A DNA stretch of 64,000 bases from Mobula hypostoma (GCF_963921235.1 NC_086123.1:9238001-9302000), one strand, 5' to 3'; positions 7,690 through 64,000 are shown, counted from the stretch's first letter. Numbers and translations: made by a program. The notes: generated by a model not told the origin, from the sequence alone.

Positions 7690-8594
7690 CAGTCAGCCCT
7701 CCTTATCCGCGAGTTCCGCATGCGCGAATTCAACCAACCGTGAATCGAAAAAACCTGCAAGTGTTCTTCCACCACTTGNNNNNNNNNNNNNNNNNNNNNN
7801 NNNNNNNNNNNNNNNNNNNNNNNNNNNNNNNNNNNNNNNNNNNNNNNNNNNNNNNNNNNNNNNNNNNNNNNNNNNNNNNNNNNNNNNNNNNNNNNNNNNN
7901 NNNNNNNNNNNNNNNNNNNNNNNNNNNNNNNNTTGGGATCAGAAGAAAAACGGGAGTTCTCTTACTAAGTAAGTCGGAACAGGTACATCCGGTATTATTT
8001 AGCGTCAGTTAGTCAAACATTTGTCTTAGTATATAGTATATATTTTACCTTTCTATGCATATAAAACACTCAAGAAACGTATGTTTCAGCGCCGGGCTTG
8101 GGAACAGAAGTTCCCGAGTTCGATCCAGTGACAGACCGCTCCCGAGCCAGGTTGATGTGGAGGATTAAAAACCCAACACCCCAAAACCCAATAATTAAAC
8201 CACTGCATTGCTCAGTAATAATTGTAGCTTTTATCGGGGCAGGGCCTTTCTCACTTTATCCTTTAAAATTGTTCCGATCGTTGACCAGCTGCAGCCTAAC
8301 ACTTTTCCAATGACCAATGGCATTTCACCTCTTTCCGATCGCTTTATAATTTCCACTTTATTTTCAATCATGATCGTGATTATTTTCGTGAACAGAAACA
8401 ATGCGGATTCAGAGCTCCGCCGCCAGGTCCTAATGTCTACCGCACTGAGACAGGTTAAATAAGGTCCAGGGTTCCGTTGGGTCCTAAGGTCCACCTCATT
8501 GAGACAGTTTGAATAAGAGACTTGAGCATCTGCGCTTTTTGATATCCACGAGGAGTCCCAGAACGAATCCCTCGCGGATAAGGAGGGCCAATTG
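7690..8594 (-). mobile_element. Tigger/pogo-type non-autonomous DNA transposon
   Basis: TIRs cagtcagccctccttatccgcga / tcgcggataaggagggccaattg; TA TSDs; internal psq-HTH remnant IENKVEIIKRSERGE...STIGTILKDK. Confidence 0.85.
7779..7932. other. Assembly gap (154 N)
   Basis: Run of N. Confidence 1.
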
Positions 8595-10764
8595 TATGTG
8601 CTCAGTTGAAGGCTACAGTCGAATGCCTGATGGATCCCCGGCCTCTCAGTTGCCTCAATTCCTCCAGCCCTTCCCCAACTTCTGTACCCTCTGGCAATCT
8701 ACTACAATTTTCATTCCTCATAGTGTCATGTGCCCTATATTCCATTAATAAAATCACTCAATCAGAATTGGCCTCACTGCATAGTTCATTTTGACCCTTG
8801 TAAATCAGCCCATTGACTACTGGGCTTGCATATTAAAATTGCTAACAAACAGCAATATGAAACAAACTGAGACGCTGCTCAAATTGCAGTGTGCTCAAAT
8901 TGTAGTTAAGCCCAGTGCAGTTTGAGAGCCACTTTCAAGACTGGGTTCAAATTTAGTAAAGGAAAATTTTTATAAATCTAGCTGATGTGCCTTCTGTCTA
9001 CAAGTACCACCTTTAGGAGTCGTGTTATCTATTTATTGTCTGTATTGTATTTGCGTTCCGCATCCTCACTCCGAATTGAGGTAATTTGTCATGTAGGTAT
9101 GGGCGGCAGTTAGCGGACGGCATGCAGCATTAAAATAAACATTTATTTTTCATTGCTGCTTGCCTTTGAATTTGATCCAGTTTTACTAGTTTTGTTTTAC
9201 ATGAGTTGCAGAAGAGTCAAATGATTTTATTGTTGGTTTTTAATAAAGGATCAAATGTACTTTTTCGACTTGGAATTTATTTAGTTGTAAGCGTGTCATA
9301 CAGTGTGATACTCCCTCACTTAGCCTCTCAGTGACTTTTAGTTTGTTTTCAAGTAGTTGCTACATTTTGTCAACAAAAAATTTTGTATACCAAACAAGCA
9401 CCAGTTTATGGCAAAGCCATCAGCACAGACTACTTCACACGGTGTTTCACGTTCTGGACAAAGAGGATTGCTCGGACCTGTTGGTGGAAAAAGAATTTCA
9501 ACACAAGGGAGTGTAAAGAAATTCCTTGCAGTTATTTGAGATAACTACCATCACAACACTGAGCAGGCACATCGGCAATGTGGGCAGCTGAAGCAACAGG
9601 CTTACCTGTGGCTTTGTGTTGATTCATGCTGTGTGTTTATGGATTGAACACAGTTTGAGTGGTCAATGTTGCCTGTCCATTGGGGACCGTAGCTTGATTG
9701 TGTGGTGTTTTCCTGATGTTTTGTCGTTCTGTTTTATTGGAGTGCTGAAAGGCCTGGCTTCTTGTGTGGTTTGTAAAGTTCGTGTTTGCTGAAATATTGT
9801 CCAGGTTGCTGACATTTGAATTGAACACTGTTTATTTGGTTTGTTTGATGTGCGAATAGTGTGTTTGTTGCCTGTGTTGATTGAACAGAATTCTGCCAGC
9901 GCGTTCTGTGAACATGAGTGGATCAAAGGATTGGACTGATGTCGGTGGCTCTGAAATGGCGGGTCGCAAAAGTCTTCCAAAGGAATGTAAAATAAATGTG
10001 AACAAAGTCAAAGGTTTAATACCATTAATTAAGGAGCTTATGAAAAATCAAGAAAATGGCTCATAAGTGCAATCTCAGTTTGAGAACTTGACTAACCTTT
10101 GTGAAGCTGCCACTAAGCTGCCCGAGGATGAACTTGAAAAACAAAGTGAATGGTTCATAAGCATTGATTGGTAAAGACAGTAGTGCATTCAAAGAGGATA
10201 TGAAACAATGGCTAGCTCAAGCATTTCACATTGATGGCCATGTTCAATCTGATGCTGCTGCAATAAATGAAGACATTCCTCACCTTACAACAGACAATGT
10301 TTCTCAAGTTCCAATGCATGTTATGACTCCAGATACAACAGATAACATACAAGATAATGTGAAACGAAGTGACAGTGCGTCCTATGTTGAAAGCAGAAGG
10401 ACTAGCTTATGAAGCTCTGTTGCAGGAAGAACATCTTCCGTATCAACTACCTCCTCTGCATGCATTAAAGCAGAGGCTGATTTAGCATGTCAATGATTAT
10501 TGAAGGACAAACATGCACTGGAAGAGCAAGAGGAACAGCTGTGGAAAAGAAAGGAACAGCTTAAGTTGGAGGAAGAAATTGCCGGACAAATGGCATAAGT
10601 GCTGAGGGCTTCAAGTGTGTCAGGTGCTAAAAATGGTGCAACAGAACAGTCCAATGGCATGAATTCCTATGTTGAAAAGGCACAAAGAAAAACAAAAACA
10701 CCCAATGCCAGTACTGATTTATTCATTCCTCAAGTGTCAGGGAACATGAACAAGATCCCCAAGA

Positions 10765-10960
10765 AACAAACATCAAAGTTGCTAGTGAATACAGCAGGCC
10801 AGGCAGCATCTCTAGGAAGAGGTACATTCGACGTTTCGGGCTGAGACGTCGATTCTACCTCTTCCTAGAGATGCTGCCTGGCCTGCTGCATTCACCAGCA
10901 ACTTTGATGTGTGTTCCTTGAATTTCCATTATCTGCAGACTTCCTCGTGTTTGCGTTTTT
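10765..10960. mobile_element. Fold-back Penelope-end mini-insertion inside the BEL element
   Basis: ~78-bp inverted arms 10760-10837 / 10843-10920; imperfect TSD aagatccccaaga / aagatcccgaaga. Confidence 0.75.
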
Positions 10961-12496
10961 AAAAAGATCCCGAAGAGGTAGTTCAGGACCGTTTACTCTC
11001 AGCCTGCACTATTGAGGCACTCTGAACCTATGTCATGACGCAACAGTTCAGGGAACATTCACTAATAACGTGGAAGAACTCTTGCTTCTGACTATAGAGA
11101 TCAGAACAGTATTTTTGATATTATGAGAAAGCAAAATAAAATAACCTTATTGTCATAACAACGCCTTTCATCTTTGCCTGAAAGAGAGATTCAAATCTTC
11201 AATCGTGGTCCATTCATGAAGGCCTTTAAAAACAGTGAAAGCAAAACTGACAACCATAGTGAATGCCTCTATTTCCTTGAACAGTACACTAGGGGTCGCC
11301 CTAGAGAACTTGTTAGAAGTTACCAGTATGTTGACCCTAAGAGAGAATATATCAAATCTAAGGCTTTGGTAATGAACAGAAAATTCCACCCACCACCATG
11401 GTAAAAGTTCTTTCGTGGGTAACCATCAAATCTGAAGATGTGAAAGCTCTTCAAGATTATAGTCTTTTTCTTAGAGGCTGTTGCAATGCTGTGGAAGAAA
11501 TGCAATGCATGGGAGAGCTGGAATGGACATGCATGCCAATTTGTTGACTTTATAAAGAAACTGTTCTTTAAGCTTAGGGTGTCCTATGAACTGCAAGAAA
11601 AGCACAACCGTAGGGCTACTTTCATTGACATTGTTAATTTTATTGAAAGGCAAGTAAAGAATATAACATACCTGCTGTTTGGGAACGTACAGGATGCTCC
11701 ATCACTGGCAATAAGCAAAGGTGTGAATAAAAGTCACAACTTCATTCTAGAGCTGAAGGAACCAGCTTTGTCACTACTGTGGCCACTGAGAAGTAAAGCT
11801 AAAAAACTTAACCTGAAACTAAAGAGAGGAAAATAGTTTCATCAGCCAAAAGGGTTTGTCTGCACTGTAGTGTAGGGTGTGGACACGTTGGGATTTGTGC
11901 CCCCGGCCGGAGAAAAGGGCTCATAGTGAGAAGATTTTCTTCCTAAAGTAAAATGGTGTCGGCTTTGGTTGTTTGTGTACAGGACACATCAGCAAAGATT
12001 GAAGGAAGCGTCTTTCATGCAAGGTATGCAGTTTTAAGCATCCCAGCGTACTTCATATCCACTCACGGGAAAGGAGAGCAGAATCAGAGCAAGTCTTGAA
12101 AGAATCATATGCAGTAGTGTGCAGTGCTGTGGTATCCAGATGCCTTGCAGGGGCTGGCGATCATGATTGTACCCTTCCCACAGTTCTAGTACGAGTCAAG
12201 TCTAAGAGGGGTAACAAGACAGTGGTTACTTGTGGTTTCCAGGAGCAAGAGAGCACAACAGTTGTTTGCACAGTGGGCCTCGTTAACAAGCTCAACCTCA
12301 CAGGAAAAAAGGACGCGCATTATCTTGTGCACCATGGATCAAGAGAAGGTTGTGAATAGCTACATTGTTTCAGGATTGGAAGTGGCTGGCTTAGATGGTG
12401 AAAATTATTGTGAACTACCAAATGTCTATATGCAGGAAAGTATGCCTGTCCACAGAGGAAACATTCCATGACAGAGGGATCTCCGGGATAGTACCC

Positions 12497-13264
12497 TGTG
12501 ACGGGTTAAAGAACCAGCAGAAATGGAAAACACCTTGGAGTCTGGTATTGCTGTTAACTAATGCTATTTATTAGTTACTACGCAATACTGTAATATAAAT
12601 TCAGAGAAATCAAACAGGCTAGCAATGATTTTAAGTATATATATATATATATATATATAAACCAAGCTTCTTCAAGCCTAAGTGTAAATGGATACAGTTT
12701 TACGATGATAAGTAAAGGTCAGTTAAGTTCGTGATATTGAGTTGTGATGGAGAGAGAGAGGTGTGGTTGCCCAAGTAAGCCGATGCCGTCAATTCTTCCC
12801 GTTGTCCTCCGAAATCCTTTAGTAGTCACCGAATGTGACCACAACAAGGGGACCGTTTTCTGTGGTGGCGTTATCAACCCAGGCGAGGGTTGGACACACT
12901 AATAACTTCCCACTGGTCACACCTTTTCCACACTGCGAGAGCCACTGATCGATTCTCCTGATCGATCGTCTAAAAACCCACCTTTCTGTGGGCACAACAA
13001 AGCTCATCCAGTGTCCAAAATCATGTGTCTGTCTACCAGCTGACCTTGTATTTATCTCACCATGCTGAACACCAGCTGTCCATCAAGTAGCTCCTCCCTT
13101 CTTTCTCTGTAGGAACTCAGAAGCTAGCAGGGTCCTTGCAGAAATTCCAAACAAACTGTGAGCAACCTTCGCCTCTCTCTCTCTTGATAACAAGATGTTT
13201 GTGCTGTACAGCTGTCTCTTTTTAAAAGCACAGTTCATAAGGGATAATTCAGGATCCCGTCACA
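12497..13264 (-). mobile_element. Probable solo LTR nested in the BEL element
   Basis: TG...CA ends with 9-bp terminal inverted repeat tgtgacggg/cccgtcaca; BEL coding sequence resumes on both sides; AATAAA on - strand near the left end; TSD not clearly resolved. Confidence 0.65.
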
Positions 13265-14058
13265 CCTGAAACATGTCTGTTTGCCAAAGTTTGATTCAGA
13301 AGTCGAGCTGCTGATAGGCACTAATGTGCCTAAGGTATTGAAGTCATTGCAAGTGATTCGCAGTGTTAATGATGCAATTGGAACAATGTTGGTTGGACTG
13401 TGAATGAACTTCTGAAAGGAGTCAATGGTGATGAAAGAGAATGTGCGTAGCCAGAGCTGACGGTTAACAGGATCTGAGTTTTGAACTTGGATGAGCTTTG
13501 GCAGTAGCAGTTTAAAGCAAACTTCCCTAAATACAGTCAGGATGAACAACCCGGTTTGTCAAGAGAAGAGCATGAGTTCATGGAGCTGGTTGCAAATTTT
13601 CAAAACTAGTGGATGGCCACTACCAGATTAGTTTTTCTTTGAGAAAGGAGATTGACATGCCAAATAATAGGAAGATGACAGAACAGCGTGCTCTAAATCT
13701 AAGGAAGAGGTTTAACAGGGATTTGTCATTTCACACTGACTACACAACTTTCACGAAGGACATCATCTCCAAAGGTTCTGCCGAAAGCGTGCGTGCGGAG
13801 GGTCTGGTATGCAGTGATGGGAAAGTTTGGTATATTCTACACCATGCTGCACACCTGTTTATCACCCCAGAAAAAGGAAACTCCATTTTGTGTTTGACTG
13901 CTGAGCGATTTTTCAGGGAACATCACTAATGCTGAGATCTTACTAGCTCACTGATTGGAGTAATGACCAGATTCGGAAAGGAACCGGTGGTGATCGTGGC
14001 AGAACGTGAGTCAATGTTTCATCAGGTTAAAGTACCAGCGGAAGGTGCAGCTGACAAT

Positions 14059-14677
14059 ACGGTGTCAGTTACAGAGATGTTTGATGTGACCTGGGAGGAA
14101 ATATGTGACAGACAAGTTGAGAAAAGTGAGATGAGAACAATAGAATAGTAAACAGATTATTGATGTTAGTGAATAGTCGATCAACGATTATGCTTCAAAA
14201 CTTGTGGATGACATTTGAGTCATGAACAAGTGATGATTGCTGTCCTTGACTACATTCGTAACAATTTGGCATTGCAATGTCTGCATGAACTCCACAAGCA
14301 ATTTCAGGCAGCCACTGGGGTGAAGTGATAGACCGGCACATGATTTGAATCACTTGAAAGGTTTGATAATGCCAACAAGATGTACAATGTAATACTGCAA
14401 GATGATCCAACAAACACAGCAACATGGAAACCGCTGAAGCCATCTGGGAAGTGAATGACTATCTGGAACAGTTTGTTGGAGATCAAGAGGCATGGCACGG
14501 ACTAACAGAGCTTTATTTCAATGAGCACAATTATGAAAAAAGCTGCATTTTTCTTGGAAGAATTTATGATGACCAACGCTCAGAGTCAATTTTACTGTCA
14601 GCATTGCACAGAGGTGAAATACACTCAAGGTGAATTTGAAAACCTGGAAGTCTCTTGAAAGTACTTTTCCCAAGCAC
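14059..14677 (+). pseudogene. EMC2: Processed (intronless) EMC2/TTC35 pseudogene fragment captured in the BEL element
   Basis: Frameshifted reading VTEMFDVTWEE...INDYASKL.DDI...EQVMIA.LDY...LQDDPTNTA...[21 protein letters not shown]...[25 protein letters not shown] follows EMC2 from the N-terminus for about three quarters of its length; start codon position reads ACG; stops and frameshifts. Confidence 0.9.
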
Positions 14678-15659
14678 ACTGGGTTCTGAGTACAAGAAGT
14701 ACCCAAGGGCACTATCTAGCCTGGGGAAGAGGGGTGCCATTCCACTTTTAGAATCAACAAGACCATAATGCCACATGAACCCCAGGAGACATTATGCTTA
14801 TATTTGATAACACAGTGCTTCATAAATTATGGATCTCAGGAAGAGTGATTCAAACCTTTCCAGACAGAAGAGGATTTGTGCAGCAGGTGTGCATCAAGAT
14901 CAAGATCGGCTGTCTGGACAGGCCTATAACCAAGATCTTGTCTTCTACGGGAGGCAGAGATTTGAGTAGCTATAGCTACAGGTGTAGAAGCTTCACTTAC
15001 TTTGGTTGTTTGACTTCATGACATTGACTTGACTTACTGAATTGACAGAGGGTGGTGGTAAAGATCACTCTGTACTGGGCTAAGTACTAGAAACCTCTGG
15101 TCTAGATGACTGTTTAAAGAAGAAAGAAGATATTAGCATGAATATTAAAATGTGTTGATAATATGTAAATGTTTATCCTTAAAGATTTCATGTCTCCTAA
15201 TTTGTAATACGTAGCTGTAATTATTATAGTGTTTTAATAATTAGGGGTTGGGATGTAGAAACCATATATCTATTTATTGTCTGTATGCTGTGCATCCTCA
15301 CTCTGTGTTAAGGTAATTTGTCACTTGGGTTTGGGAGGCGGTTAGCGGGCAGTATGCAGCATTTGGTGGGGACTAAAGTAAACAAATAGTCACCTGTTCA
15401 CTTTTGCAGCATATAAAGGGGGAGGGGGAGAGCATATTTTTCTGCTTGTCTTTGTTTGAATTTGATACAATTACGCTCATTTTGTTTTACGTGAGTTACG
15501 GAAGAGTGGAATGATTTTATTGTTGGTTTGTAATAAAGGAATAAATGTACTTTTTCAACTTGGAATTCAGTTAGTTGGAAGCACGTCGTAGAGTGTGATA
15601 CTCCCTTACTTAGCCTCTCAGCAATTTTTAGTTTGTTTTCAAGTAGTCATTAGTCATGT

Positions 15660-15960
15660 CGAAGTTTAAAATAAAGTTTATCAGAGTACATACATGTCAC
15701 CACATACAACCCTGAGATTCCTTTTCTGCAGGCATACTTAGAAAATCTATAGAACATTAACTGTAAACTGTAAACAAGCTGTGCAAATGCAAATATAACT
15801 AAATAGTAATAAATAATGAGCATGAAATAATATAACAGAGTCTTTAAATGAGTGTAGCTATCCCCTTTTGTTCAAGAGCTTGATGGCTGAGGGGTTGTAA
15901 CTGTTCTTGAACCTGGTGGTGCGAATTCCAAGGCGCTTGTACCAAGAGCATGGCCTGATG
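15660..15960 (-). mobile_element. Rex1/Babar-like LINE 3' fragment
   Basis: TTRFKNSY.PS motif on - strand; homologous to 21815-22100. Confidence 0.6.
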
Positions 15961-16477: not shown

Positions 16478-17636
16478 ATAAGACATAGAAGCAATATTAG
16501 GCCATTTGGTCCATTCAATCAGCTCTACCATTCCTTTATGGCTGATTAATATCTCTCTCATTCCCATTTTGCTATTTTTCTGTACTTTTGACACCCTTGA
16601 TAATTAAGAACCTATCAACCTCCATTTTAAATATACCCAAAGACTTGGCCATCATGGCTGTCTGTGGCAACGAATTCCACAGATTCGCCACCCTCTGGCT
16701 AAAGAAGTTCCTCCTCAACTCTGTTCTAAAGAGACATCCTTCTATTCTGAGGCTGTGCCTCGGGTCCCGGACTCCCCCACTATAGGTAACATCCTCTCCA
16801 CATCCACTCTATCTAGGTCATTCAGTATTCGATAGGTTTCAATGAGATCCCACTGCTGCACTGTTCTTCTAAACTCCAGCGAGACAGGACCAGGGCCATC
16901 AAACACTCTTCATGCATTAACCCTCTCATTCCTGGGATCATTCTTGTGAGCCTTCTCTGGACTCTCTCCAATGTTAGCACAACCTTTTTGAGATAAGGGG
17001 CCCAAAACTGCTCACAAGACTTCCAAGTGTAGTCTGACCAATGCCTTGTAATGCTGATGCTTTATATGCTTGCTCTTATATTCTAGCCCTATTGAAATGA
17101 GTGCTAACATTGTGTTTGCCATCCTTACCATTGACTCAGTCTGCAAGTTAACCGTTAGGGAATCTTGCATGAGCACTCCCAAGTCGTTTTTCACCTTGGA
17201 TTTTTTGAATTTTCTGGTCACTTAGAAAATAGTCTACGTGTTTGTTCCTTCCACCAAAGTACACTTCCTTATACTATATTTTATCTGCCACTTCTTTGTC
17301 CATTCCCAAATCTAAGTCCTTCCTTCCTCAACATTACCTGCCCTCCACCTATCTTCATATCGTCCACAAACTTGGCCACAAACCTGTCAGTTCCATCATC
17401 TGAATCATTGACATACAGTGTAACATAAAGAGAAGCAGTCCCAATGCTGACCCCTGCCGAACACCACTGGCATTCAACAGCCAACCAGAAAAGACTCCTT
17501 TATTTTCACTCTTTGCCTCCTGCCAGTCAGGCATCATCTATCCACTGCAAGTATCTTCCTTGTAGTACTGTGGGCTCTAATTTTGTTTAGCAACCTCATG
17601 TACTACACCTTGTCAAAAGCCTTCTGAAAATCCAAG
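16478..17636 (-). mobile_element. CR1-type LINE fragment
   Basis: VAKFVDDMKIGG, DLGVLMQDSL, YKALVRLHLE motifs. Confidence 0.85.
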
Positions 17637-21814: not shown

Positions 21815-22725
21815 TCTTCAAAGTAAAATATGTTATCAGAGGACAGACATGTCACCACATACAACCCTGAGGTTCTTTTTCCTGTGGGCATACTCAGCAA
21901 ATCCATAGAACAGTAACTGTAAGCGGGTTCAAAGAAAAACACTGAATATAAATAAATAGCAATAAATAAGGACTATGAAATAACAAGATGGAGTCCATAA
22001 AATTAGACCATCAGTTGTGGGAACACCAGATAAAGAACGAGTGTAGTTATCCCCTTTTGTTCAAGCGCCTGATTGTTGAGGGGTAGTAACTGTTTTTGAA
22101 CCTGGTGGTGCGGGTCCTGAGACACGTGTACCTTCTATCTGATGGCAGCAGTGAGAAACGAGCATGGCCTGGATAGTGAAGATCTTTGTTGATGGATGCT
22201 GCTTTTCTATGGCAACATTTCCTGTAGATGTGCTCAATGGTTGGGAGGGTCTTACCTGTGATGTACTGGGCCGAATCCACTACCTTTTGTAGGGTTTTCC
22301 ACTCGAAGCCATTGGGGTTGACATACCAGGCCGTAATACACCCAGTCAGCACACTTCCCACCACACACCTATAGAAATTTGCCAAGGTTTTTGATGATAT
22401 GCTGAATCTCCACAGATTTCTGAGGAAGTAGAGACACTGTTTTGTTCCTTTGCAATTATATTTATATGATGGGTTCAGGACAGGTCCTCTGAGAAGTGAC
22501 ACCCTCTCTGCCTCTGATGATTACTGGCTCCTGGACCTCTGGTTTTCCTCTCCTGCAGTCTACAGTCTGTTCCTTGAACTTATTGACATTAAGTGCGAGG
22601 TTGTTATTACTACACCACTCAGCCAAATTTTCTATCTCCTCCTTGTAGGCTGATTTATTACCACCTTTGATATGACCCACAATAGTGGTGTCATCAGCAA
22701 ACTTATATATGGTGTTGGAGCTGTA
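21815..22725 (-). mobile_element. Rex1/Babar-like LINE RT C-terminal fragment
   Basis: IYKFADDTTIVG...NNLALNVNK and CLYFLRNL...FYRCVVGSVLTGCITAWY...TTRFKNSYYPSTIR. Confidence 0.8.
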
Positions 22726-22809
22726 TATGCTTCCAAAACATGGTTCACCAACTTCTTGAATCAGGATCTGGCAGTCTAAATGAATACATAATACAAGCAC
22801 ACATATCTG

Positions 22810-23560
22810 AGCAACACACACAAACTGCTGGAGGAATGCAGCAGGTCAGGCAGCATCTATGGAAATGAATAAACAGTGGATGTTTTGAAAGGAAACCCTT
22901 CATCAGGACTGGAAAGGAGGGGCAAAGATGCTAGAGTCAGGTGGTGGTGGGAGGGGGAAGAACAAACTAGAAAATTTGAAACTATGTGAAAGTGGGTGGG
23001 GGAGGGAGGGAGAAGTAAGAAGCTGGGAGGTGATAGGTGAAAAAAGTAAAACCCTGGAGAAGGAGGAATCTTAGGAGAGGAGAGTGGACCATGAGAGAAA
23101 GGGAAGGAGGTGCACTGAGGGAGGTGATAGGGGGAGAGAAGAGGTCAGAGTGGGGAATTGATGAGGAGGTAAGGGAAAAATGATTACCAGATGTTGGAAA
23201 AATCTATGTTTCTGCCATGAGATTGGAGACTACCCAAATGATGATTTGCTCCTTAAACCTGAGATTGGCCTCATTGTGGCAGAATGTCAGAATGGGAATG
23301 GGGATAGGAATTAAAATAGTTGACCATCATAAATTCCATTTTTTGATGATGGAGCAGAGGTATTCAACAAAGCAGTCCTAAATCTATGCCAGAAGTGACC
23401 CCAACAGATTCTCAGGCAAAGTGTTGCCTCACCTGAAAGGACTGCCTGGGGCCCTGAAATAGAGGTGAATGGGCAGGTGTCGCATTTTTGCCACTTGCAG
23501 AGGGGTCAGGAGGAAGATTAGTGAGCAGGGATGAATGGACAAGGGAATCACAGCAGGAGC
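22810..23560 (-). mobile_element. Penelope-like element 3' fragment
   Basis: QGPRQSFQVRQHF (start of the GIY-YIG region) plus degenerate hammerhead end near 22875-22912. Confidence 0.75.
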
Positions 23561-34419: not shown

Positions 34420-35767
34420 ACAAGACCATAAGATATAGGAACAGAAGTAAGCCATTCGGTCCATCAAGTCTGCTCCATCATTCAATAATGGGCTGACTCA
34501 ATTCTTCCAGTCATCCTCACTCCCCTGCTTTCACCCCATATCCTTTGATGCCCTGCATAATCAAGAACCTACCTCTGCCTTAAATACACCCAATGACTTG
34601 GCCTCCACAGCCGCTTGTGGCAACAAATTCCACAGACTTACCACCCTCTGACTAAAGTAATTTCTCTGCATCTCAGTTCTAAAAGAACGTCCTTCAATCC
34701 TGAAGTCGTGCCCTCTTGTCCTAGAATCCCCTATCATGGGAAATAACTTTGCCATATCTAATCTGTTGAGGCCTTTTAACATTCACAATGTTTCTATGAG
34801 ATCCCCCCTCATGCTCCTGAACTCCAGGGAATACAGCCCAAGAGCTGCCAGACGTTCCTCATATGGTAACCCTTTCATTCCTGGAATTATTCTCGTGAAT
34901 CTTCTCTGAACCCTCTCCAGTATCAGTATATCCTTCCTAAAATAAGGAGCCCAAAACTGCACATAATACTCTAAGTGCGGTCTCACGAATGCCTTAGAGA
35001 GCTTCAACATCACATCCCTGCTCTTATATTCTATACCCCTACAAATGAATGCCAATATTGCATTCACCTTCTTCACAACTGACTCAACCTGGAGGTTAAC
35101 CTTTAGGGTATCTTGCACAAGGACTCCCAAGTCCCTTTGCATTTCTGCATTTTGAATTCTCTCCCCATCTAAATAATAGTCTGCCCATTTATTTCTTCCA
35201 CCAAAGTGCATGACCATACACTTTCCAATATTGTATTTCATTTGCCACTTCTTTGCCCATTCCCCTAAACTAAGTCTCTCTGCAGGCTCTGTTTCCTCAA
35301 CACTACCTGCTCCTCCACCCATCTTTGTATCATTGGCAAATTTAGCCACAAGTCCATTAATACTGTGGTCCAAATCATTGACATACATTGTAAAAAGCAG
35401 CGGTCCCAACACCGACCTCTGTGGAACTCCGCTGGTAACCAGCAGACAGCCAGAATAGGATTCCTCTATTCCCACTCTCTTTTGTGTTGACCAGCCAATG
35501 CTCCACCCATGCTAGTAACTTCCCTGTAATTCCATGGACTCTTATCTTGCTAAGCAGCCTCGTGTGCGGCACCTTGTCAAAGGCCTTCTGAAAATCCAAG
35601 TACACATCTACTGCATCTCCTTTGTCTACCCTGCTTGTAATTTCCTCAAAAAATTGCAGTAGGTTTGTCAGGTAGGATTTTCCTTTCAGGAAACCATGCT
35701 GGTTTTGGCCTATCTTGTCATGTGCCTCCAGGTACTCCGTAATCTCATTCCTAACCATCGATTCCAA
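34420..35767 (-). mobile_element. CR1-type LINE, relatively young RT fragment
   Basis: ORFs 35375-35827 and 34783-35475: QHGFLKGKS, DFQKAFDKVPH, GVPQ.SVLGPLLF, KFANDTK. Confidence 0.92.
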
Positions 35768-36496
35768 AAGCAGAGTGAAGGATGCCCATGGCGTTTCAGA
35801 GAAATCATCAAGAGGAGGTGATTCCAAGTAGAACTAAAAGCCTAGTCAAACAGGCAAACAGCAGGCCGAGGAGAGTTTCAAAAAGATACACAGAATAACA
35901 GTGTAAACTAGTTCTTGACAGCACACTGTATAAAGGCACAGGTTAAAGTGAACTCAGGTAAACATGACTATCTGTTCTGATATCAAATCCACAATCTGAT
36001 TAGTTTGTACCAATTTATGGGAGGCTGCCATTCACTTCTTACCAATTCTGAATGATTGTCTGCAAGCCAGAGACATCTTGGCCATTAGGTAGGCCAGGAA
36101 AAGAGTAATGTAAAGACAGACAAAGAATGAACAGATAAGAAATGGAAATTAAGAAATGGATACCTAAATTATTGAGTATACCCCTGAACTCCCAGAAGAC
36201 TGATTATGGCAAACTTTAGGCTCAGATGTTGTTTTAATTAACAAAGGCAGAAACAAAAGAATCCATTGGTCACAGGAAGACATGATCACATTGTTCTTGG
36301 TTGAACAATTACAATGGCAGATTTGACTTATACTTGTAATTCTGCCTTAATGATGAGTAAATATTAAAGAACCATAATAAAACTATTTTAACACAAATAT
36401 GCAAATTTTAGCTTCAAGCCAAACCAAATATGTAAAATTATCAGTCTCAAAGCCTTATATTAGCTGACCTTTACCATTTAAAAATTGGAAACTTAC

Positions 36497-40910: not shown

Positions 40911-42987
40911 CTACAACAGAAACAGATAACAACATGCTATGAAAATACAATCCTTTCTATCACATGTCAGTGCATAGAACATTTGCTGGGTCTGACTCTG
41001 GAGAAAACTTCGAGGAGTTTAGCTTTCCCATATCCTTCTTGCCAATATTTAATACCTAGGCTTGCAAAATACTTAACTGCAGTGGAGAAGATCAATCCAA
41101 TATGTGCAAAACGTATGAGCTGTAACATATTGCCATGAGATTAACCCAAGATTATTCTCATACCTTTCTACTATACAACATGGAATACAAAAGCACAGGA
41201 GCAGGAGCAGACCACTTGTCAGCATGAAACATGTTTAGCTGTCAAAATCTCTGCTCTTCGTTAAAATCGTGACTGCCCTCATCTTTATACTCCTGCCCAT
41301 TTCTCCATACTCACAATTGCCTCAGAGGCCAAAAAACCTGCCCATCTCAGCCTTGATCATGCCTATAGAATTCCCAAGATTCACAGCCCTTAAAAGGAGA
41401 AATTAACTTCTCACCTCAATCTTAAATGAGTGACTTTTAATTTCAAAAGTCTGCCCCCAATTCTAGATTTCCCCCACAAGGGGGAAGCATCCTCTCGAAA
41501 ACTCTTTTTAACACCCCTGAGAATATTAAGTATTTCATTAAAATTACCTCTCATTCTTTTAAACTTGCAAGTTCTGTTTCAACCTGTTCAACTTTTCATA
41601 ATGTCAACCCTTTACCCCAGGAATCAATATAATGAACTTCCTTTGAAATGCCACTGCAGCAGGTTTATCCCTTATGTTAGAAGGCCAAAAACTAGTCACA
41701 GTTCTCCATATATGGTCTCACCAATTGTACAATACTTTCAAAACTGCAACCCCTTTTCAGTCAAAGATCAGTTAACAAATATTGGGTGTGAAACTCTTCA
41801 CAGTAAGAAATAACTTTATCGATGTTACTTTTTATTTTTTAAAAAATGCTCTAGCCAATTGTTCAGAAAAGAAATCCCCAAAATATAATTTTACTCTGAT
41901 CCTGACCTAACACCTTAGCATCCATTCATCATACACTGGATCTTATGTTTCTCACGCGTTCTATCATTAGCACATTCCTATATGCTTCACTTTATGATGA
42001 CCATTACTTAACTTGAATACCTTGCTATCATATCAATGAAAAGGAACCAAACTTGTTTCTGAAGTTCAAAGCAGAAAGAAACAACACTGAAGGAATACCA
42101 TTGCAAGCATGAACATGCCCGGTTGTCAATGGGACCATTTGCAACATTAAACAGTTAGAATGCACTTTTGCATCTTGTAGTTCATCATGCAATGGCATCT
42201 CCACGGTTTGCTTGCACAATACATGCCAATGATATAGTTTAGAGGAGTGTCCGTGGAGTCACCAGGGAGGGGCTGCTGACTCGGGGTGTGCTCCTTTTGG
42301 TTTCTCTGACAGTACATTCCAAATTCCTAACGGAGGATGAGAACACACTAAGCTACAATTCCCCTGAACACCTTATAACTAGCCTTAGGACTTGCATCAC
42401 CAGGTTCAAGAACAATGACTATCCCTCAACCATCAGGCTCTTGACCAAAAGGTGATAACTACACTCAGTTACCCATCCATTGAGATGTTCCCACAACTAA
42501 TGATCTCACTACGAGGAATCTATCTTGTTATCTCATGTTCTCGTTATTTATTGAAATCTGCATTTGCAGTTTGTCATCTTCTGAGCTCCAGCTGATCTTC
42601 CATTGATATAGTTACTATTCTATAGACTTGCTGAGTGCACCTGTAGGAAAATGAATATCAGGGTTGTATATGGTGACATGTATGTACTCTGATAATAAAA
42701 TTTACTTTGAACTTTGAGAGCAGCAGACACGTGGTATCAGCCCGAGCTGCAAGGTCCCTCAACATCACACATGGTCTTGACTACCACCAGACTTTCAAGG
42801 TCACTATGTCTAAACTCTAGGATTTCTATGCCTAAAAACTCTGTGGGATTACCTTTCTCAGAAAATAAACAACACTGTTTCTACATCGCACACACGAGGA
42901 AATCTGCAGATGCTGGCATTTCAAGCAACACACATGAAAGTTGCTGGTGAACGCCGCAGGCCAGGCAGCATCTCTAGGAAGAGGTAC

Positions 42988-43023
42988 AGTTGACGTTTCA
43001 GGCTGAGACCCTTCGTCAGGACT
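42988..43023 (-). ncRNA. Minimal hammerhead motif, left-arm copy with stem I mismatch
   Basis: agtc-CTGACGA-agg(gtctcag)cct-GAAA-cg-TC-aact; C:A mismatch next to the cleavage site. Confidence 0.65.
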
Positions 43024-44420
43024 AACTGAAAGAAGAGCTTGTAAGAGATTTGAAAGTGAGAGGGGGGAAAAGGGAAGATCCGAAATGATAGGAGAAGACA
43101 GGAGGGGGAGGGATGTAGCCAAGAGCTGGACAGTTGATTGGCAAAAGGGATATGAGAGGATCATGGGACAGGAGGCCCAGGGAGAAAGAAAGGGGGGGGG
43201 GAACCAGAGGATGGGCAAGGAGAATAGTGAGGGGGACAGAGGAAGAAAAAGGAGAGAGAGAGAAAGAATAAATGTGTGTATATTAATAAATAACAGATGG
43301 GGTACGAGGGGGAGGTGGGGCATTAACGGAAGTTAGAGAAGTCAATGTTCATGCCATTGGGTTGGAGGCTACCCAGACGGAATATGAAGTGTTGTTCCTC
43401 CAACCTGAGCGTGGCTTCATCTTTACAGTAGAGGCGGCCCTGGATAGACATATCAGAATGGGAATGGGATGTGGAATTAAAATGTGTGGCCACTGGAAGA
43501 TCCTGCTTTTTCTGGTGGACAGAGCGTAGGTGTTCAGCGAAATGATCTCCCAGTCTGCGTCGGGTCTCGCCAATATATAGAAGGCCACATCGGGAGCACC
43601 GGATGCAGTATATCACCCCAGCCGACTCACAGGTGAAGTGTCGCCTCACCTGGAAGGACCATTCAGGGCTTGTCCATTTGTCCTCATCCCTCCCCACCGA
43701 TCTCCCTCCTGGCATTTATCCTTGTAAGTGGAACAAGTGCTACACATGCCCTTACACTTCCTCCCTCTCTACCATTCAGAGCCCCAGACAGTCCTTCCAG
43801 GTGAGGCGAAACTTCACCTGTGAGTTGGCTGGGGTGATATACTGCATCCGGTGCTCCCGATGTGGCCTTCTATTTATTGGCGAGACCCGACGCAGACTGG
43901 GAGATCGTTTTGCTGAACACCTACGCTCTGCCCGCCAGAGAAAGCAGGATCTCCCAGTGGCCACACATTTTAATTCCACATCCCATTCCCATTCTGACAT
44001 GTCTATCCACGGCCTCCTCTACTGTAAAGATGAAACCACACTCAGGTTGGAGGAACAACACCTTATATTCTGTCTGGGTACCTTCAACCTGATGGCATGA
44101 ACACTGACTTCTCAAACTTCCGCTAATGCCCCACCTCCCCCTCATACCCCATCCGTTATTTATTTATATATACACATTCTTTCTCTCACTCTCCTTTTTC
44201 TCCCTCTGTCCCCCTCACTATACCCTTTGCCCATCCTCTGGTTCCCCCCCCCCCTTTTCTTTCTCCCTGGGCCTCCTGTCCCATGATCCTCTCATATCCC
44301 TTTTGCCAATCAACTGTCCAGCTCTTGGCTCCATCCCTCCCCCTCCTGTCTTCTCCTATCATTTCAGATCTCCCCCTCCCCCTCCCACTTTCAAATCTCT
44401 TACTAGCTCTTCTTTCAGTT

Positions 44421-44456
44421 AGTCCTGACGAAGGGTCTCGGCCTGAAACGTCGACT
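44421..44456 (+). ncRNA. Minimal type I hammerhead ribozyme motif (Penelope-associated)
   Basis: agtc-CTGACGA-agg(gtctcgg)cct-GAAA-cg-TC-gact: intact core, stem I agtc/gact, stem II agg/cct, palindromic ACGT stem III; predicted cleavage after C44452. Confidence 0.8.
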
Positions 44457-46319
44457 GCGCCTCTTCCTATAGATGCTGCCTGGCCTGCTGCGTTCACCAG
44501 CAGCTTTGATGTGTGTTGCTGTTTCTACATGTTACTTCGTCTGTATTCTGAAGGCTCACCACACCTTCCGAAAGGCAATTCATGACGGACAACAAATGGT
44601 CAGATACAAGTGAACAAAAAAAAACTAATGCAGATGTCAAGCTAATGTAATATTCTAGAATGCAAACTTCCCAGGGCAGCCCACAGAGGAGGAAACATAC
44701 CTCTCTGCCAAAACTGACAAAGTGGCAGCATTAGCACTTAGAGGCAGGCCAGTTTCCTGGTTGAGAATCGGAATGTTTGAAGGATTTACTGACCAGTTAC
44801 TTGCATTACAGGATCTTTCCTGATGGCCCTGTAGCTAACAAAAAGTAACACTATACATTAAATAGGTGTACTTTTCAGAGCTCATTCAATGTACGTACTG
44901 GAATAAACATAACACCCTTACATGTCAATAGCATTCTCATTGAAAATAAAGACATTACTCACAATACTTTGATTTTAACCCCGTATACAAAAGGTACTGA
45001 TATTTAATCACTGGATATCTTTATATTGGAAAATGCAATTGCAGATATAAATACATGATTTTCTTTTTTAAAAAAAAAGGCTATGCTCTGTAAACTGAAG
45101 GACAACATACTCTCTTGCTCTTGAATACTTTGGACTCCACATTCTGAAAATCACCTCAAACAGTAATTTTCCCAAATATTACAAATGATCTCATCAATTC
45201 ATCTTATGCAGCATAAAATAAAATAAACCTCAGTGCACGGACCAGTGTGGAAGAATCGTGGGGAAATAGGCTGGGTTTTTATTCCCTGGAACGAAGGAAC
45301 CCGAGGGATGATCTAATTAAGGTTTATATAAAATAACAGGCATTGGTAGGGTAGATGGTCAGAATCAGTTTTCTCCTTGGAGAGAGAGAAAAAAAAACAA
45401 GAGCATAGATTTAAGGTTAGAAGACGACATTTCATTGGGGATTTGACAGGAAAGATGTCTTAAGAAAAGGTGGTTGATAATCTGGAGCTCTGTCACAGTA
45501 AGTGGTGAAATCAGATACAATCTGATTAAAAGGGTATTTACAGAGGCACTTAAATGGACGAGGCACAGCAAAACAGCTTAATGTAGACAAATGAGATTAG
45601 TATTCTTGGGTAAAAAAGTTGCCATTGATGTAGTGAGCCAGAAGTTTCATAGAGATAACACTAAGCTGCCTTTGCCATAATTAATATAGTGAGAACACCA
45701 TACAAACAATTGGCTCAGAATTCAGTATTGTTAAAAACAAAACATTCCGAGTGACCCTAGATCAAGTTGCTCATAGATATATAAAATGTTTACATGTTGA
45801 TAAACAGTTCGTTTCACTGGAACCACGTGATCTAATAAATACAAATACATTGCTCATCTTAAAATGCATGCAGAAATATGCTGCCTGTTTATTGTAGATT
45901 ATATGATGTTGTAATAATGAAAATGAACCTTAGTAAAAATTCATGTCTGACCAACATAATTCCTCCCAGCAGCAACCCTAGCCAAGTGAATCTAAGGGAT
46001 GGGCAAATCGAATAAGAGCAACTCTGTTATAGTTGAGTGATTGTAAATAATGGGATGGGTTAAAAATAAATCCTTTTAAAGAAAGGCACTCCTGTTGATG
46101 ATTACATTGAGGTTTCAACTCTACTGTTGCATTCAAAAACCAAGTATATAGATTAGAGGAAACAATAAATGGTTTCCAAGTAAAACTCTATTTAACATTC
46201 AGCCTAGCCCATCACAAATCATCCAAGCAATGAAAGGAGGTTGAAACAAGAAATGGCAGTCACCTTTTGTTGGGCACCCCTCCCATAATAGCTCCCAAAT
46301 TCACTGAACCTTTGCAAGT

Positions 46320-48362: not shown

Positions 48363-49128
48363 TATATAACCATATGACAATTACAGCACAGAAACAGGCT
48401 ATCTCGGCCCTTCTAGTCCATGCCGAACTCTTACTCTCACCTAGTCCCACCGACCTGCACTCAGCCCATAACCCTCCATTCCTTTCCTGTCCATATAACT
48501 ATTCAATTTAACTTTAAACGACAACATTGAACCTGTCTCAACCACTTCTGCTGGAAGCTCATTCCACACAGCTACCACTCTCTGAGTAAAGTAGTTCCCC
48601 CTCATGTTACCCCTAAACTTTTGCCCTTTAACTCTCAACTCATGTCCTCTTGTTTGAATCTCCCCCACTCTCAATGGAAAAAGCGTATCCACATCAACTC
48701 TATCTATCCCTCTCATAATCTGAAATACCTCTATCAAGTCCCCCCTCAACCTTCTATGTTCCAAAGAATAAAGACCCAACTTGTTCAACCTTTCTCTGTA
48801 ACTTAGGTGATGAAACCCAGGTAACATTCTAGTAAACCTTCCCTGTACTCTCTCTATTTTGTTGACATCTTTCCTATAATTTGGTGACCAAAACTGTACA
48901 CAATGCTCCAAACTTGGCCTCACCAATGCCTTGTACAATTTCAACATTACATCCCAACTCCTATACTCAGTGCTCTGATTTATAAAGGCCAGCATACCAA
49001 AAGCCTTCTTCACCACCCTGTCCACATGAGATTCCACCTTCAGGGAACTATGCACCATTATTCCTAGATCCCTCTGTTCTACAGCATTCTTCAATGCCCT
49101 ACCATTTACCATGTATGTCCTACTTTGA
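48363..49128 (-). mobile_element. CR1-type LINE 3' end (young)
   Basis: Open ORF: QRDLGIMVH...LYKALVRPSLEHCVQFWSP...RRLRGDLIEVF...FTQRVVAVWNELP. Confidence 0.92.
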
Positions 49129-49229
49129 TGTTCACAGAGAAACCCAAACATTTTAATTGCAGTTATTTTCCTGATAATTCTATGCACATTTAATATTATT
49201 TATTTAACAGCATGTCACAGGAACCAGCC

Positions 49230-58510: not shown

Positions 58511-58884
58511 GAATAATCTGGAGGAGCTCAACAGAGTGAGCCACATCTGTGAGGGGTGTGGTTGGAGGTGGAATAGTCAGCATTTTAGCTCGAACCCCTG
58601 CTTCAGGATGGAGTGGTGAGCGGAGATGGCCAGTATGGAGAGGGGACACCGTGAAGCGGAAGCCCGGGGTGACTTGTAGACTGACGAGGGATGGCGGCTG
58701 ACAGGGAGGCTGAGCTTGGCAAGAGTAGCATGGGGTGAAGTTGCAAGACAAGAGAGCAGGTGGCTGGTGGACTAGCAAAAGTAAAAAAAAATGTAGATGA
58801 ACCGAGTTTGGGGGTGGGGATGGAAGAGGGAAGGGCAGGACGCAGGACAGCTACTGGAGGGTAGTAAGCAGCAACAAAATTCTA

Positions 58885-59198
58885 GCAACACACATCAAAG
58901 TTGCTGGTGAACACAGCAGGCCAGGCAGCATCTCTAGGAAGAGGTACAGTCAACGTTTTGGGCCGAGACCCTTCGTCTGGACTAACTGAAGGAAGAGTTA
59001 GTAAGAGATTTGAAAGCGGGAGGGGGAGGGGGAGATCCAAAATGATAGGAGGAGGGGGAGGGATGGAGCCAAGAGCTGGACAGTTGATTGGCAAAAGGGA
59101 TATGAGAGGATCATGGGACAGGAGGCCTAGGGAGAAAGAAAAGGGGGGGGGAACCTAGAGGATGGGCAAGGGGTATAGTGAGAGGGACAGAGGGACTC
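58885..59198 (-). mobile_element. Penelope-like element end, same subfamily as the 42.9 kb element
   Basis: Near-identical to 42924-43240; 16-bp TSD with one mismatch (cagcaacaaaattcta / cagcaacacaattcta); hammerhead core mutated. Confidence 0.85.
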
Positions 59199-62729: not shown

Positions 62730-64000
62730 GGACTTTAGGACAGAATTTGACAAGGTCCGCAAGGTAGGAGGTTCAGGCACTTGGGATCCAAGGCAATCCG
62801 ACAAATTGGATCCAAAATGGGAGCTGGGAGGGAGAGGACAGTAGTAAAAGGATGCTTTCTGATTGGAAGTCTCTGGTCAGTGGTGGGTTGCAGGGATTGG
62901 TGGTAGAACTCTTGTCATTTGTGATATAAATGACTTGAATGTGAAGTAGGAGATCTGATTATTAAACATAGAACATAGAATAGTACAGCACAGTACAGGC
63001 CTTTCGGCCCACAATGTTGTGCCGACCCGCAAACCCTGCCTCCCATATAAGCCCCCACTTTAAATTCCTCCATATACCTGTCTAGTAGTCTCTTAAACTT
63101 CACTAGTGTATCTGCCTCCACAACTGACCCAGGCAGTGCATTCCATGCACCAACCACTCTCCGAGTAAAAAACCTTCCTCTAATATCCCCCTTGAACTTC
63201 CCACCCCTTACCTTAAAGCCATGTCCTCTTCTACTGAGCAGTGGTGCCCTGGGGAAGAGGCACTGACTATCCACTCTATCTATTCCTCTTATTATCTTGT
63301 GCACCCCTATCATGTCTCCTCTCATCCTCCTTCTCTCCAAAGAGTAAAGCCCTAGCTCCCTTAATCTCTAATCATAATGCATACTCTCTAAACCAGGCAG
63401 CATTCTGGTAAATCTCCTCTGTCCCCTTTCCAATGCTTCCACATCCTTCCTATAGTGAGGCGACCAGAACTGGACACAGTACTCCAAGTGTCTGCAGATG
63501 ACATGAACATTGGTGGTAGTGAGGGACGTTGTCTGTGGCTACAGCAGGATATTCGATAGGATGAAACATTAGAGTGTTAGCACATGGAATTTAATACAGA
63601 CCAGTGCATAATGCTGCATTTTGGTAAGTCATATAGGTGTAGGACATATAATGTAAATATAATAACATATGATGAACTGAGGGAGTCCATAGTTTCTTAA
63701 AGTTGTAACACAGGTCCATAGGAAAGTGAAGAAAGGGTGCCACACTTGCCTTCTTGAGTCATGACATAGAATATGTTGGGTGTTGCAAATTTACAAGACA
63801 TTGACTACATCATGCTTGCTGTTCTGGTCAGCACACTATAGGAAGGATACGATTGTACTGGAGAGAATGCAGAGCAGATTCACCCAGATACTTTCTGGAT
63901 TGGAAGACCTTGGTTATGGGGTGAGATTGATAAGATGGACTTGTTTTTCCTGAAGTGAAGAAGGCTGAGGGGCAACCTGATAGAAGTATACAAGATTATG
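62730..64000 (+). mobile_element. Older CR1-type LINE, runs off the window end
   Basis: FDKV, LFVI.INDL-like, ADD, LERMQSRFT remnants; interrupted by 62965-63492. Confidence 0.7.
62965..63492 (-). mobile_element. Young CR1 3' end nested in an older CR1
   Basis: ERRRMRGDMI.VHKI...FFTRRVVGAWNALP; catagaa tandem tail on +. Confidence 0.85.

Follow-up and report, generated by a model that had tools for sequence, protein, structure and literature searches.

Our analysis of a 64,000-nucleotide stretch of Mobula hypostoma DNA, referred to here as the window, identified what is by homology a BEL/Pao LTR retrotransposon, in which about 2.5 kb of pol has been replaced, not interrupted, by an EMC2-like copy followed by a short filler. 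With respect to the anatomy of this chimera, the copy lies on the same strand as the element, is intron-free and truncated at its 3' end, carries neither a poly(A) tail nor a target site duplication (TSD), and is enclosed in an element with both LTRs present. Since the replaced pol, the lack of poly(A) and TSD, the shared orientation, the two LTRs and the 3' truncation occur together, the best explanation, and in our judgment the probable one, is an LTR-mediated retrocopy, wherein a spliced EMC2 mRNA was captured by BEL/Pao template switching.

The BEL/Pao element and the limits of the replaced segment

The copy of the retrotransposon, decayed and now non-autonomous, spans 9023 to 15656 on the plus strand, as delimited by its LTR pair and by gag-pol homology to BEL polyproteins. 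Direct repeats spaced 6.2 to 6.3 kb apart align as a 5' LTR of 342 nt (9023-9364, plus strand) and a 3' LTR of 403 nt (15254-15656, plus strand), both with TG...CA ends, with 81% identity across 333 aligned columns (K2P 0.23). Assuming a neutral rate of about 1-2.5e-9 per site per year, integration would date back some tens of millions of years, up to about a hundred million, an age at which later deletions are plausible. Adjoining the 3' LTR on its upstream side, we read a purine-rich run resembling a polypurine tract (15240-15253, plus strand), and the sequence from 15190 to 15269 is conserved in the marine-metagenome relative L001 (blastn). Next to the 5' LTR no primer-binding site was recognized, and Rfam and tRNA scans of the window returned nothing. 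A candidate 5-bp TSD of the element itself (9018-9022 and 15657-15661) agrees in 4 of 5 bases and is weak, a match of this kind having about a 1.5% chance per boundary choice with several choices possible. The cis-acting ends of the element are all kept, which we count in favor of capture.

By its gag-pol domains, as far as these are present, the sequence places the element in BEL/Pao (Belpaoviridae-type). The region from 11111 to 14043 (plus strand) matches a BEL gag of the DUF1759 type, the protease region and the N-terminal part of the reverse transcriptase (RT) in tblastn searches with P0151, P0005 and P0033 and in phmmer searches; it is one broken gene region, disrupted by many stops and frame changes and by some 0.8 kb without a match. 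With a 117-aa piece of it (13576-13926) as the query, exhaustive phmmer searching gave 1150 matches, including full-length BEL/Pao polyproteins whose Pfam content comprises DUF1759, RVT_1, Peptidase_A17, Integrase_H2C2, rve and DUF5641. The second region of homology (14782-14940, plus strand) corresponds to the last part only, about 55 residues, of the DUF5641 integrase C-terminal domain, as detected by Pfam, by tblastn and by tblastx to L001 and other relatives. With Pfam alone this is the sole BEL domain recognized in the element, the piece 14779-15018 matching profile positions 40-92 with an E value of 1.9e-7 (31.7 bits, cut-off 23.1). Within the matched segments of the retained gag-pol (2.1 kb) there are 14 stops and at least five frame changes.

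The surviving parts are colinear with the BEL polyproteins P0151, P0033 and P0124, and this allowed us to define what has been lost. In P0151, an 1864-aa protein of Nile tilapia (Oreochromis niloticus) with DUF1759, RVT_1, Peptidase_A17, Integrase_H2C2 and DUF5641, residues 305-1051 align by tblastn to 11111-14043 and residues 1807-1857 to 14785-14937, leaving about 755 residues missing from the element in the window. Absent are the RT core, the Peptidase_A17/RNase H region, the integrase zinc finger and core, and the first 39 positions of DUF5641.

We furthermore determined the limits of the replaced segment against 24 natural BEL relatives from metagenomes, 22 of them from JGI metagenomes, using tblastx. 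The closest BEL relatives share 55 to 78% identity with the element at the protein level, and P0154, encoded on L001, reaches 78% over the RT piece and is an ordinary BEL RT. On the left side, matches to the relatives stop at 14034-14049 (mode 14043), on the right side they begin at 14785-14797, and the interval from 14050 to 14784 is covered by none of the 24. The distance between the two matched points is 741 nt in the window versus 2.3 to 2.7 kb in the relatives (2674 nt in L001 and 2297 to 2580 nt in L011, L012 and L020). These boundaries are sharp and consistent across the 24 relatives and the 22 metagenome loci. A preliminary description of this DNA had proposed that the BEL RT match ends near 14045, that the BEL integrase C terminus resumes near 14780, that most of RT, RNase H and integrase was replaced and that both LTRs are present, and our data agree on each point, with pol being broken on both sides of the insert. 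At the 5' junction, a zone of 9 to 15 nt (14044-14058, plus strand) separates the end of the BEL matches from EMC2 residue 1 at 14059; it consists either of the final bases of BEL or of a short leftover from the 5' untranslated region of EMC2.

Three further observations concern the element and its relatives. A BEL relative on an ENA metagenome contig (P0134, 247 aa) has the RT start joined straight to the integrase end, with no host cargo, from which it follows that large internal deletions of this part of pol recur in the BEL family. Between the 5' LTR and the first recognizable gag homology, about 1.7 kb (9365-11110) had no match in anything searched. The stretch of about 0.8 kb within 11111-14043 is matched neither by the tilapia BEL polyprotein nor by the metagenomic relative closest to the element, contains a TA-type microsatellite, has no other copy in the window and is probably a further nested insertion.

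The EMC2 segment and the adjoining filler

The segment from 14059 to 14676 (plus strand) corresponds to residues 1-218 of the 297 residues of EMC2 (ER membrane protein complex subunit 2), numbered after human EMC2 (PDB 6ww7_B, 297 aa), which served as the reference. Stop-free pieces of 14053-14748 were searched one by one against the PDB, together with two short single-frame reads carrying X at stops. The matching pieces cover residues 3-20 (E value of 0.22), 28-55 (2.4e-5), 55-88 (1.4e-6), 97-125 (2.5e-5), 136-179 (4.6e-14), 172-211 (1.4e-10) and 198-218 (4e-4). All of them match EMC2, in colinear order and in sense orientation on the strand of the element, with about 50 to 65% identity to the human protein in the aligned pieces; the Pfam profile TPR_EMC2 also gave a match, weak and sub-threshold. 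At the level of sequence, the similarity to EMC2 is far beyond chance. An origin of the whole structure as an assembly chimera or from chance similarity is therefore extremely unlikely, with six or seven colinear EMC2 pieces reaching E values down to 4.6e-14, with both parts of the chimera decayed to a similar order inside one LTR pair, and with no gaps near the junctions; nothing specific speaks for such an artifact, the run of 154 N at 7779-7932 (an assembly gap or mask) being far from the region.

Vertebrate EMC2 is, as a matter of general knowledge, a multi-exon gene, and introns are expected on this basis in the parental gene. With 618 nt for 218 codons, the segment has no room for an intron. 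At its start the copy extends as far as the initiator codon position, and it ends 79 residues before the C terminus, such that the 3' end is missing and the 5' end is not. It contains about seven in-frame stops in 0.6 kb and at least four frame changes, and ATG has been lost from the Met position, a decay of an order similar to that of the BEL part with its 14 stops in 2.1 kb. As the frame is broken and the last 79 residues are absent, the segment is a pseudogene fragment and not a functional EMC2. No part of the chimeric copy has coding capacity now, and most likely it has no function. For annotation, the value of this result is that the locus should be recorded as an EMC2 pseudogene and not be called a gene.

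No poly(A) was found at the insert, where the longest A run within 14001-14900 is 6 nt, and no TSD surrounds it. The sole repeat common to both flanks, a 7-mer shared by the left flank and the filler, was considered as a TSD and rejected, as repeats of this length are expected at about chance level (about 0.4 expected). The EMC2 insert consequently lacks the 3' poly(A), the flanking TSD and the 5' truncation by which LINE-mediated processed pseudogenes are recognized. These data bear directly on another possible history, in which an EMC2 processed pseudogene made by a LINE was inserted into the RT region of an already integrated BEL copy, after which deletions took away the 3' part of the pseudogene with its poly(A), one copy of the TSD and about 2.5 kb of pol. 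The setting is not unfavorable to such a course of events: the element is ancient and has been struck by others (a MITE-like insert and the unmatched stretch of about 0.8 kb), the window is rich in CR1-type LINEs, and internally deleted BEL copies such as P0134 occur in nature. We nevertheless regard it as unlikely. The insertion would have to be followed by at least one large deletion starting exactly inside EMC2 and most likely by another event for the filler, in total at least two or three further events, and no remnant of a poly(A) or TSD is left. CR1-type LINEs are not known to produce processed pseudogenes efficiently, which also speaks against this history. Moreover, it would make coincidences of the same-strand orientation and of the in-frame entry and exit. 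The EMC2 segment was entered in the frame of BEL pol and left in the same frame, and EMC2 plus the filler would once have been in frame with the integrase remnant, an agreement expected by chance alone in about 1 of 9 cases.

The filler itself (14677-14781, plus strand) comprises 105 nt, or 35 codons, and is neither EMC2 coding sequence nor recognizable BEL. Searches against the PDB, Pfam, 150 BEL proteins and the 24 BEL loci, in all frames and on both strands, gave nothing significant, and neither did a DNA alignment with L001. We considered whether the filler represents, in decayed form, the first 39 positions of DUF5641, for which its length nearly fits, but in every relative the identity drops from about 55 to 60% to noise exactly at 14782-14785, and we rejected this assignment. 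The filler may instead derive from a third template or from a noncoding part of the EMC2 transcript. The preliminary description had likewise noted, on the basis of sequence features, about 620 bp of decayed, intronless EMC2 from its start region, then about 100 bp of unassigned sequence, and no poly(A) or TSD around the insert; all of this was confirmed, and EMC2 homology, whose absence would have undone that account, is strong.

A filler of this kind would also result from a DNA break in an integrated BEL copy that was repaired by end joining, with the loss of about 2.5 kb and the capture of a free EMC2 cDNA fragment and another small fragment. Such repair would account in one event for the replaced segment, for a partial cDNA without poly(A) and for an unrelated 105-nt piece. 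Yet it leaves the agreement in orientation and frame to chance, events of this type are rare compared with template switching in virus-like particles, and there is no direct evidence for one; we therefore consider it very improbable.

A model for EMC2 capture and its relation to known systems

For capture by template switching, we infer the co-packaging, the order of the switches and the integration as a unit as follows. First, BEL/Pao genomic RNA and a spliced EMC2 mRNA were probably packaged together. During minus-strand cDNA synthesis, RT would have started with the 3' LTR region, passed through the polypurine tract and about 55 terminal codons of pol, and then left the BEL template. It may next have copied about 105 nt of a third template or of another part of the EMC2 transcript, and would have gone on along the EMC2 mRNA, entering at codon 218 and proceeding to the 5' end of the message or nearly so. 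Returning to the BEL RNA within the N-terminal part of RT, it would have finished normally, and the chimeric cDNA, with both of its LTRs, would have integrated as one unit and undergone neutral decay since. The most economical history is a single reverse-transcription event with two or three template switches. Template switching onto EMC2 mRNA had already been put forward in the preliminary description; its structural predictions all held, and the mechanism itself would be the best explanation of them.

LTR-mediated retroposition has been documented across animals, including for BEL/Pao elements and in fish (Tan et al. 2016, Genome Res 26:1663, PMC5131818). Its signature consists of a replaced internal open reading frame (ORF), a stronger 3' truncation, the lack of poly(A) and TSD and the presence of both LTRs, and microsimilarity between the mRNA and the element at the switch points is a hallmark in the literature (PMC5131818). 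Such retrocopies sometimes involve more than two switches or inserted filler, with 2 to 26 nt of de novo sequence at the junctions, and of the informative zebrafish retrocopies, 5 of 7 are attributed to LTR-mediated events (PMC5131818). Among the BEL/Pao cases, CG4799_CG11924_r is carried by the Pao element BATUMI, and a mosquito retrocopy is flanked by BEL18_AG (PMC5131818). In the window, flanks from the same element in the same orientation are likewise found, with BEL RT on the left and DUF5641 on the right, both on the plus strand within one LTR pair; a segment of the ORF is replaced, poly(A) and TSD are missing, there is no 5'-truncation bias, and both LTRs are there.

The chimera is like the retrocopies of Tan et al. 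(2016) in that a partial, extensively 3'-truncated host cDNA without poly(A) or TSD has replaced an internal part of the ORF, in the same orientation and between both LTRs, with a BEL/Pao element involved and with extra switches or filler possible. It differs in its great age and complete decay, the published retrocopies being young or polymorphic, in having a cartilaginous fish as its host, and in showing no sign of transcription or of further copies. In addition, its filler of 105 nt exceeds the 2 to 26 nt described for de novo sequence at retrocopy junctions (PMC5131818), which is a point against capture, as are the single copy known among the material searched and the age of the element, given that later deletions are plausible in an element this old.

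Analogously, in retroviral transduction and in the human HERV-K / FAM8A1 processed pseudogene (PMC5131818), host mRNA sequence is fused between gag-pol and the 3' end, and replication genes are lost while the LTRs are kept, resulting in a replication-defective chimera. Unlike in retroviral transduction, the cargo in the window shows no sign of past expression, selection or propagation, the element belongs to BEL/Pao and has no recognizable env, and the cargo is a housekeeping subunit of the ER membrane complex. Plant LTR elements, such as maize Bs1 and those containing rice retrocopies (PMC5131818), resemble it as non-autonomous elements with host cDNA as cargo, but the plant elements form recognizable families, some of them transcribed, whereas the chimera described here is a single known copy. 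With LINE-mediated processed pseudogenes it shares an intron-free, decayed copy of a host mRNA, which here has neither poly(A) nor TSD, is cut short at its 3' and not at its 5' end, and lies in sequence that was replaced and not interrupted.

Both the mechanism and this kind of structure are already established, and EMC2 in a BEL/Pao element is a further example, tidy and not of a new kind. Our literature search found no report of an EMC2 retrocopy and nothing on BEL/Pao cargo in sharks or rays. The present case adds a BEL/Pao-borne example from a cartilaginous fish to the LTR-mediated retroposition already shown in insects, zebrafish, chicken and mammals. It also lends support to the idea that host transcripts have long and widely entered vertebrate genomes without pseudogene production of the L1 type through template switching in virus-like particles. 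If orthologous loci in other batoids were compared, it could become a dated example.

Copy number and surroundings

With respect to dispersal, we found no second copy of the chimera in the 64-kb window and no chimeric ORF in protein collections, and a protein search for EMC2-like ORF fragments of similar length, as other retrocopies would give, yielded no candidate. None of 16 ORFs from the window was on record in an exact look-up in a collection of 15 billion proteins. The one protein-collection match to the junction ORF, P0154, was rejected as a chimera, being the ordinary BEL RT from a marine metagenome described above. Among the JGI metagenome contigs, in a scan whose patterns were drawn in part from the junction and the start of EMC2, all 22 BEL loci match the BEL part of the junction ORF only (query residues 1-41) and continue as RT. 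A dispersed, cargo-carrying family has thus left no sign in the window, in the protein collections or in the 24 metagenomic BEL relatives.

A more far-reaching reading we regard as unlikely. Here the element would have belonged to a non-autonomous elasmobranch BEL/Pao family that once propagated, with EMC2 joined in frame to pol on either side and with the 105-nt linker being a piece of a second captured transcript. The order of parts in such a family would have been the RT N terminus, EMC2 residues 1-218, the 35-codon linker and the integrase C terminus, an arrangement that shares the low probability of the reading as a whole. If true, this would make it a multi-gene, transduction-like cargo element in cartilaginous fish.

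The window consists of repeat-rich vertebrate DNA with about 40% G+C. A MITE-like short palindromic repeat lies at 10760-10955, and one copy of it (10760-10920) equals its own reverse complement at 89%; this copy is inside the BEL element, upstream of the recognizable gag. Further copies, 86 to 91% identical, are found at 42887-43009, 44435-44520 and 58877-58969. Fragments of CR1-type LINE RT, mostly on the minus strand, occur at 16740-17540, 22047-22821, 34783-35827, 48441-49187 and 62915-63340. For the 248-aa CR1-type ORF at 48441-49187, the best named relatives are from Mobula hypostoma (89% identity) and Leucoraja erinacea (85%), with Hypanus sabinus also among them, pointing to a batoid elasmobranch as the most likely host. 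Finally, two overlapping ORFs on opposite strands (43323-43715, minus strand, and 43603-44100, plus strand) contain near-identical cysteine-rich segments. By eye, we take these segments to resemble the GIY-YIG-type endonuclease module of Penelope-like elements, which suggests an inverted pair of such elements.
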